From: Camelus dromedarius
Lineage: Eukaryota
Direction: 5' to 3'
NCBI RefSeq assembly: GCF_036321535.1
Contig: NC_087451.1
Location: 37,138,001 to 37,202,000, forward strand
Length of the DNA stretch: 64,000 nt
This document shows, piece after piece, positions 178 to 62,692 of the stretch. How positions within the stretch are numbered: position 1 is the first letter of the stretch; each line of letters opens with the position of its first letter. A program made the translations under genes and the position numbers. The notes beneath the pieces are model-generated. The model saw only the letters and a list, made by a program, of their open reading frames with translations, was not told the DNA's origin and searched no databases.

Positions 178-406
178 GGGAGTTCGACATTTGCAGATAC
201 TAACATATATATATATATTTTATATATATAAATTTTATATATAAAATAAATAACAAGTTCATTCTGTATAGCACAGGGAACTATATTCAGTATCTTGTAA
301 TAATTATGTTGAAAAAGAATATGAAAATGAATATATGTATGTTCATGTATGACAGAAGCATTGTGCTATACACCAGAAATTGTCACATTGTAAACTGACT
401 ATACTT

Positions 407-452
<46 letters not shown>

Positions 453-11987: not shown

Positions 11988-12153
11988 CTTTTTTTTTTTA
12001 ATATTTTTTATTGAGTTATAGTCATTTTACAACGTTGTGTCAAATTCCAGTGTAGAGCACAATTTTTCAGTTATACATGAACATACATATAGTCTTTGTC
12101 ACATTTTTTTCGCCGTGAGCTACCACAGGATCTTGTATATGTTTCCCTGGGCT
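11988..12153 (-). mobile_element. Young camelid-type L1 3' tip inserted in an old L1ME
   Basis: T-tail then ttattgagttatagtcattttacaacgttgtgtcaaattcc...; ACCATTCT at 11980-11987 and 12154-12161 is a TSD candidate. Confidence 0.85.
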
Positions 12154-12224
12154 ACCATTCTTTATCTAAATACTTATGTACACCCTTCATTGTTCTCTTA
12201 AGTTGTTAAAAATGGAATTTAGAG

Positions 12225-12870: not shown

Positions 12871-13481
12871 ATCTAAATACATTTACATGACCAAATTAAC
12901 TTCCAGAAGAGTTGCTCCCATTTACAATGCCTTCCCCAAGCTCTAACCCATTCCGGATATTCTTACTCATTTTTAGCAATGAAGACGTGATAAGAAAGAA
13001 ATCATCCCTTGTCAATTATTTTCATTTGCATTTCTTTGATTACGAGTAATGCAGAGGAAAAATTATCTGCATATGTGTTGTACTGGAAGGAGTCATAGTG
13101 ACCCAAAAATAGTTGTCTTCAGGGAAGGGAATGAGATGGAGAAGACGGAGAAGGAAGGGGGACTTCTATTTGTTACTCTAAAACCTTGTATATTGCCCAA
13201 ATATTATATAAAGAGAAAATATTCATGTATTATTTCTATAACTAAGCATATACACATCGTGACAAGGAAGTGCTGTTGAAACTTCTCTCTGACTCCACAC
13301 GGCTGGTACTGGTGAGCGTTGTTACCTTCCTTAGTAGAACTGAGCGACCAACTTTGGAAATGGCTTATCTAGACCTGAAACCTCAGGCTGCACCTAGAAC
13401 ACCAAGAGGAAATGAGGACTCAGCACACGGGCCTGATCACCGCAGCCGTACTTCCTGTATTTTAAGGACTAGGTTACTTTT

Positions 13482-14261
13482 TTGTTTTGTTTTGTTTCAT
13501 GATCACGCATATGTTTGCTCTACCTATTCATCAATATTTTAAGCATAAACATTCTTGCAGATAAATCTTTGTGGACATCCTTAATTTTTTCCTTTTTTTT
13601 TTTTTACACTATTTCACTATTTTATTTTTTTTAACATTTTTTATTGAGCTATAGTCATTTTACAATGTTGTGTCAAATTCCAGTGTAGAGCACAATTTTT
13701 TAGTTATACATGAACATACATATATTCATTGTCACATTTTTTTCTCTGTGAGCTACCACAAGATCTTGTATATATTTCCCTGTGCTCTACAGTATAATCT
13801 TGTTTATCTTTTCTACAATTCGAAATCCCAGTCTGTCCCTTCCCACTCCCCACCCCCTTGGCAACCACAAGTCTGTATTCTATGTCTATGAGTCTGTTTC
13901 TGTTTTGTATTTATGTTTTTTTTTTTTTTTAGAATCCACATATGAGCGAGCTCATATGGTGTTTTTCTTTCTCTTTCTGGCTTACTTCACTTAGAATGAC
14001 ATTCTCCAGGAGCATCCATGTTGCTGCAAATNNNNNNNNNNNNNNNNNNNNNNNNNNNNNNNNNNNNNNNNNNNNNNNNNNNNNNNNNNNNNNNNNNNNN
14101 NNNNNNNNNNNNNNNNNNNNNNNNNNNNNNNNNNNNNNNNNNNNNNNNNNNNNNNNNNNNNNNNNNNNNNNNNNNNNNCAGGTGTCTTTTTGAAGTAGGG
14201 TCCCTTCTGAATATATGCCCAGGAGCGGGATTCCTGGATCCTATGGTAAGTCTATTCCTAG
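13482..14261 (-). mobile_element. Young camelid-type L1 (ORF2 C-terminus plus 3'UTR), 5'-truncated, with a 3'-transduced segment at about 13482-13620
   Basis: Perfect 17-bp TSD AGGACTAGGTTACTTTT at 13465-13481 and 14260-14276. The target reads TT/AAAA on the minus strand. The body matches the 49296-49970 copy. Confidence 0.9.
14032..14178. other. Assembly gap (147 N) inside an L1
   Basis: N run counted directly. Confidence 0.99.
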
Positions 14262-15072
14262 GACTAGGTTACTTTTAAAGCATGTGCAAAACCACGGGCT
14301 GGACCCTAAGGTCCGATTTTCAGTTCACAGGATATGGTCACCACCCATCTTGGGAAGAACAAAGGGAGACTACAGAGACCAACATAGGGTCCCTTTGCCT
14401 TTTCCTGGCTATTGGGTGAACACAGTTGGAGCTTTTGAAATGTGGGACTTAGATCAACCCAGAAAGAAGAGGGCGTGGTTAGCTCAGCATAGAGGTGGGG
14501 CTACCGTCACCTGTCTGGTTCCAAAATGATTAATCATCATTCACACCTTTCATCCTTGCTCCCCAAGTAATAAACAAAAACAGCGTGAAGAGAGTGAAGA
14601 TAGTTAATTGTGTTTATCATGATTGGTAAGTGTATAATTCTCCATCTGATGGGGGCTAAAATATTATAATACTGTAATACAAATATTTGAGATCCTCCTT
14701 CTCAGGAGGAAAGACTCTTTAATTACCCAGCCAACTAACAGACCTCCATCAGGCTGGGCTCTGTAGGATACGGAGAGGGGGACGGGGTGGCAGAGAGTGG
14801 GGTGGGGTGCCCAGGAAGGCAGGGCCCGTCACCCTGCATCATGAAAGGACTCGGGTGGGATGGGATAAAGAGGAGACAACAGGCATGATGGGGTGGAGTT
14901 GGTGGGGATGAAAGACGGAGGGGAAACAGGGGAGGAGGCAGGAGTCTAAAGCATGGACTTTGTGAAGAGAGGGACCTGTAACAAGGACGTTTAGGGAAGT
15001 GCACTAATCACCATATACCTCAGAAATGTAATTCTCACTTCTTCACCCCTTCAAAAGTTATTGAGCCAAGAC

Positions 15073-23073: not shown

Positions 23074-62692
<39,619 letters not shown>

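Follow-up and report, generated by a model that had tools for sequence, protein, structure and literature searches.

What accounts for the 151 nt that separate the tail of a 5'-truncated L1 from its target-site duplication (TSD) in the 64-kb stretch of DNA that we analyzed (the window)? The L1 lies on the minus strand, and its own A tail is followed by sequence that is not L1, by a second A-rich tail, and only then by the TSD. Was this additional sequence carried along from a source locus, was it joined to the L1 by another route, or was it already in place when the L1 arrived? We favor an ordinary partnered L1 3' transduction from a putative source copy, to which we assign a probability of roughly 0.7. 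Because the poly(A) signal of L1 is weak, 3' transduction commonly accompanies L1 mobilization; it has long been established and was reportedly first demonstrated by Moran and colleagues in 1999 for human L1.

The limits of the insertion are set by the 17-mer AGGACTAGGTTACTTTT, which occurs exactly at 13465-13481 (the left copy, on the 3' side of the minus-strand insertion) and at 14260-14276 (the right copy, on the 5' side). These two matches are the only ones in the 64 kb at up to 2 mismatches, and a pair of matches was found in 0 of 100 dinucleotide-preserving shuffles. The bases flanking the two copies differ, and therefore the duplication is exactly 17 bp, within the range of ~7 to 20 bp for a TPRT insertion. 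The homology to L1 overlaps the right copy by 2 nt (junction microhomology). The reconstructed empty site reads ...ACTTTT/AAAG... on the plus strand, equivalent to TT/AAAA on the sense strand of the element, and is the L1 endonuclease consensus (TTTT/A), in agreement with the nick consensus 5'-TTTT/AA-3'. Both the 17-bp TSD and the endonuclease site had been put forward in the original prediction, and our analysis recovered both. The inserted block (13482-14259) measures 778 nt, 147 of which are N, and is made up of 627 nt of 5'-truncated minus-strand L1 (13633-14259) and the 151 nt of extra sequence (13482-13632). We also considered a 9-nt repeat, TATTTTAAG (13458 and 13535), as a TSD and rejected it, since chance alone should yield ~0.5 pairs of this kind in 534 nt.

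Is the L1 portion a single continuous copy? Its sequence is homologous to L1 ORF2 and to the family 3'UTR and ends with AATAAA and an A tail, and its identity to other copies in the window is 88.5 to 92.9%. The C-terminal remnant of ORF2 (13929-14259, minus strand) spans 109 codons, including 147 masked bases, and is collinear with a sibling copy at 49 kb. By LINE-1 ORF2p numbering, the truncated 5' end corresponds to about codon 1165 of 1275. The remnant contains a premature TAG at 14243-14241 (TAT to TAG), and its stop codon is at 13931-13929. The stop-free ORF2 pieces of the element itself, which at 20 to 26 aa are too short to score, gave no match in PDB or Pfam. The sibling piece that is collinear with the 5' end of the element (49268-49408) has a stop-free translation, which matches LINE-1 ORF2p at residues 1151-1182 of 1275 with an E value of 1.4e-8. 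Downstream of ORF2, the 3'UTR (13633-13928, minus strand, ~296 nt) contains a G-rich tract near 13836-13857 and its own AATAAA at 13645-13640.

The masked bases form an N run of 147 nt (14032-14178) inside the conserved C-terminal part of ORF2. On one side of the run, minus-strand 14261-14179 aligns with 49328-49410 (91.6% identity), and on the other side, minus-strand 14031-13610 aligns with 49558-49978 (88.5% identity); both belong to the same single plus-strand sibling at 49 kb. The stretch of this sibling left unaligned between them is 147 nt, equal to the length of the N run, in a comparison based only on sibling coordinates and spacing. The ORF2 frame can be followed through 14258-14181 (26 codons), through 2 + 147 + 1 bases (50 codons), and from 14030 through 33 codons to the stop. 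The frame starts on either side of the run (14258 and 14030) are 228 nt apart, which is 76 codons, and the frame is therefore preserved across it. With collinearity to the sibling at equal 147-nt spacing and with the frame intact, the N run thus leaves the element unbroken. The matching TSDs on its outer sides also argue against a mis-join of two loci across the run, which would hardly produce such a match. The exact length match suggests that this run is a deliberate mask rather than an assembly gap of estimated size. Three N runs are present in the window (14032-14178, 33290-33441, and 48515-48730), and all three look like deliberate masks, not assembly gaps. The sequence just after the third run (48732-48986) presumably resembles the antisense strand of L1 ORF2.

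We then asked where copies of this L1 family normally end, using the three other copies in the window. The 49-kb sibling (49296-49970, plus strand), which is 5'-truncated, is flanked by an exact 17-bp TSD, AAGAAATACAGATGCAT, at 49279-49295 and 49971-49987; its tail abuts this TSD, and this copy serves as a plain-insertion control. The second copy is a 154-nt L1 3' end (12000-12153, minus strand) whose A11 tail likewise abuts a TSD, here a shorter one with an exact core of 8 nt (AGAATGGT, at 12161 and 11987). An A16 run located ~25 nt farther on has the look of a second tail, yet it lies outside the TSD and belongs to the target. The third copy is an older L1 3' end (252-412, within the region 252-445, plus strand) of 78% identity, with a (TA)n microsatellite at the position of the tail and no A run. 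In all four copies (the element under study and these three), family homology stops at ...AATAAAAAATGTT plus the A run, or the TA run in the old copy; in the three others, the homology ends as ...CTCAATAAAA(AA)(T)GTT, again followed by the A run or, in the old copy, the TA run. Since the three other copies end at this point and the tails of the 49-kb and 12-kb copies lie against their TSDs, the 151 nt at 13482-13632 are outside the family 3' end. The end point previously assigned to the L1 is the point at which these three copies stop.

How are the 151 nt arranged? Read on the minus strand, the AATAAA of the 3'UTR is followed by AAATGTT, with 7 nt between the signal and a first A run, A8 (13632-13625), which is located at the end of family homology in the alignment with the three other copies. 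Next come a 19-nt spacer, TAAAATAGTGAAATAGTGT (13624-13606), with a perfect 8-nt tandem duplication inside it; a second internal A run, A13 GG A6 (13605-13585); a carried non-L1 segment of 87 nt (13584-13498); and a terminal tail, AAAC(AAAAC)2AA (13497-13482), which merges with the initial AAAA of the TSD. TRF reports the terminal tail as a repeat of period 5 with 3.6 copies and 100% matches, and this A-rich tail lies directly against the 3' TSD. The succession of 3'UTR, A run, spacer, longer A run, unrelated sequence, (AAAAC)n, and TSD is as originally described. TRF also reports a weak period-27 repeat (67% matches) at 13584-13642, spanning both internal A runs, and 'TGTT plus A8' recurs loosely as 'GTGT plus A13'.

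One TSD pair thus encloses the L1 together with the 151 nt of non-L1 sequence that lead from the end of the L1 to the 3' TSD. Could these 151 nt have been present at the target beforehand? No TSD-like match was found after either internal A run, and therefore the L1 did not land beside pre-existing sequence; with the TSD located beyond the extra sequence, we rejected this explanation.

A 3' transduction can explain this arrangement by one L1-driven, endonuclease-dependent retrotransposition event that would have inserted 13482-14259 as a whole. The template would have been an L1 transcript of a source copy elsewhere in the genome, and this transcript would have read past the L1's own AATAAA and the genomic A tract into the downstream flank. 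Such read-through at the source locus is something that we infer. The nicked target (ACTTTT-3') would have been primed on the A-rich end of the RNA, and reverse transcription would have proceeded through the flank and the internal A runs into the L1, where a stop after the last 627 nt would account for the 5' truncation with its 2-nt microhomology.

How does this copy compare with known transductions? In a human L1 survey based on long reads, ~25% of insertions carried a transduction, 71% of transductions were under 100 bp, and 72% of partnered transductions had two poly(A) tails; 79% of transduction endpoints had a signal 10 to 30 bp upstream, and 21% had none (PMC13009371). The camelid copy shares with partnered L1 3' transductions an L1 3' end that has a signal and an A tract of its own, a unique downstream sequence, a second A-rich tail, one TSD pair, and the TTTT/A site, and the length that it carries is <100 bp, as in most human cases. 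It differs from them in that it has no terminal signal (like the 21% minority in human), in that its tail is (AAAAC)n and not pure A, and in its camelid host. Of the transduction originally predicted, then, the anatomy was recovered (one TSD pair, a consensus nick, an internal signal with its A run, non-L1 sequence, and a second tail), and the suggested L1ME resemblance of the carried sequence gained no support.

What of the 3' end of the RNA? None of 16 poly(A)-signal variants was found in the 87-nt segment or in the 40 nt before the terminal tail, and thus none stands 10 to 30 nt upstream of the tail. The weak point conceded in the original prediction, that no canonical AATAAA precedes the final tail, was accordingly confirmed. 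Two possible explanations for a patterned tail with no signal are priming on an A-rich repeat in the source flank and decay of a poly(A) tail to a microsatellite.

Priming on an A-rich tract within a long transcript would fit the same observation. Was the RNA, then, an L1 transcript at all? A host transcript that did not initiate from an L1 (a pre-mRNA or a lncRNA) and that held a dead L1 3' fragment along with its flank could have been retrocopied in trans, giving the same layout with no active source L1. Because the copy is 5'-truncated, it offers no evidence that its template initiated at an L1 promoter. However, L1 proteins strongly favor the RNA that encoded them (cis preference), and trans-mobilized copies are far fewer than L1 copies. 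Moreover, over the 146 columns common to three copies, the L1 part of the element has 4 private changes, the fewest of the three (versus 6 and 13), consistent with a template of a then-active lineage. We consider a host transcript of this kind to be quite improbable.

Within the transduction reading, does the carried sequence record one step or two? A second AATAAA (13626-13621) is made where A8 meets the spacer, and it is located 15 nt upstream of A13. This spacing between AATAAA and an A run is normal for cleavage and polyadenylation, so the second A run can be the true poly(A) tail of an earlier short transduction. In generation one, a 19-nt mini-transduction would have been polyadenylated via the AATAAA at the junction of A8 and the flank, and generation two would have added the 87-nt transduction. 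The carried part is probably a record of two generations, a count that we infer from the arrangement of tags and tails. The original prediction of two successive transductions thus seems to gain some support from the second AATAAA, real though not decisive; on the other side, the 8-nt tandem duplication of the spacer and its weak likeness to the L1 terminus plus tail mean that the spacer could be tail slippage, an equally simple origin. Slippage or re-priming at the L1 terminus may have produced these 19 nt.

Transduction tags that span multiple generations are documented in human L1 (PMC13009371). As in such serial transductions, two unrelated tags succeed one another in the camelid copy, an A run comes after each of them, and an AATAAA stands before the first tag at a fitting distance from the A run of that tag. 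The camelid copy differs in that its first tag is only 19 nt long and contains the 8-nt tandem duplication, and in that its ancestor loci are putative. A fuller version of the two-step scheme, in which a two-generation tag (19 nt and then 87 nt) would owe its last 3' end not to signal-directed polyadenylation but to priming of reverse transcription at an (AAAAC)n microsatellite of the source flank, is possible, but we hold it to be doubtful.

What, then, is the 87-nt segment? Sensitive blastn and tblastx searches revealed no copy of it beyond chance within the 64-kb window. The best match, 67% over 46 nt at 31804-31849, had a score of 16 versus a shuffle maximum of 15.5, in a region that does not look like L1. 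As no copy is present in the 64 kb, a local duplication and an abundant SINE are both ruled out as its identity. Rfam returned no family for 13380-13720 on either strand at E values up to 10, the 22-aa reading of the segment had no match in PDB or Pfam, and its exact 24- and 25-mers had 0 matches in JGI metagenome contigs, where camel gut samples might include host DNA. The resemblance to an ancient L1ME that had been claimed for this sequence found no support from blastn or tblastx in the window or from PDB or Pfam. As a weak hint, the minus-strand composition of the segment (37% A and 11% C) resembles the sense strand of L1 and differs from the balanced flanks of the target.

Could the segment have arrived separately from the L1? 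In a history of two successive insertions, a plain L1 would have landed first, its A13GGA(n) tail at the 17-bp TSD, and a short retrocopy in the same orientation (the 87 nt plus the AAAAC tail) would later have entered its A run. New insertions are known to target A tails, and the A6 found at each edge of the inner block (13590-13585 and 13483-13478) might represent a short TSD made only of A, although an A6/A6 pair inside tails is uninformative. Against this history, the inner nick that it implies, TTTT/CC on the plus strand, has a pyrimidine after the nick and is off consensus. The inner block has no poly(A) signal and does not recur as a repeat family in the rest of the window, and insertion of a 5'-truncated copy of a unique RNA into a target of ~30 nt would be far rarer than transduction. 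We therefore regard two insertions as unlikely.

A second way of joining unrelated sequences is a chimera formed by template switching or RNA ligation, in which reverse transcription would have started on an unrelated A-rich RNA and jumped to the poly(A) tail of an L1 RNA. L1 chimeras generally look like this copy, with one TSD pair around two unrelated sequences that share an orientation and meet at an A run. U6/L1 and Alu/L1 chimeras have a single TSD pair, an endonuclease motif, and two sense-oriented sequences, but in them L1 forms the 3' part (bioRxiv 10.1101/2025.02.02.635956). In the camelid copy, the foreign sequence comes after the L1 tail and matches no small-RNA family. In the catalogued chimeras in general (U6, U3, 5S, tRNA, 28S, Alu, or mRNA with L1), L1 likewise occupies the 3' side, where reverse transcription starts, and not the 5' side as here. 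Together with the negative Rfam result on both strands, this makes a chimera very improbable.

Is the insertion, most probably a transduction, a reproducible feature of the genome? Each of 20 runs (16 samples from 10 studies, one organism) contains 0.87 to 0.90 of the sampled words of 13100-14600, and the insertion-bearing locus is therefore a reproducible and common feature of this organism. ORFs of the left flank and across the right junction had no entry in a gene-position index consulted for orthologous contigs. Judged from the private changes, the private divergence of the L1 part would be about 3%, with a wide error, and a source copy that survives at ~3% divergence should be easily found by BLAST.

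The phenomenon itself is already well known, and the importance of this copy goes little beyond annotation. Within camelid genomes, the 87 nt and the 19-nt spacer could tag the source L1 and its other offspring. The insertion is a possible presence/absence marker if it is younger than some camelid splits, and a divergence of ~3% is compatible with either case. If the scheme of two tags followed by internal priming is true, this copy would document that L1 can naturally prime at an A-rich tract inside an RNA, and one camelid L1 source lineage would be traceable through two hops.
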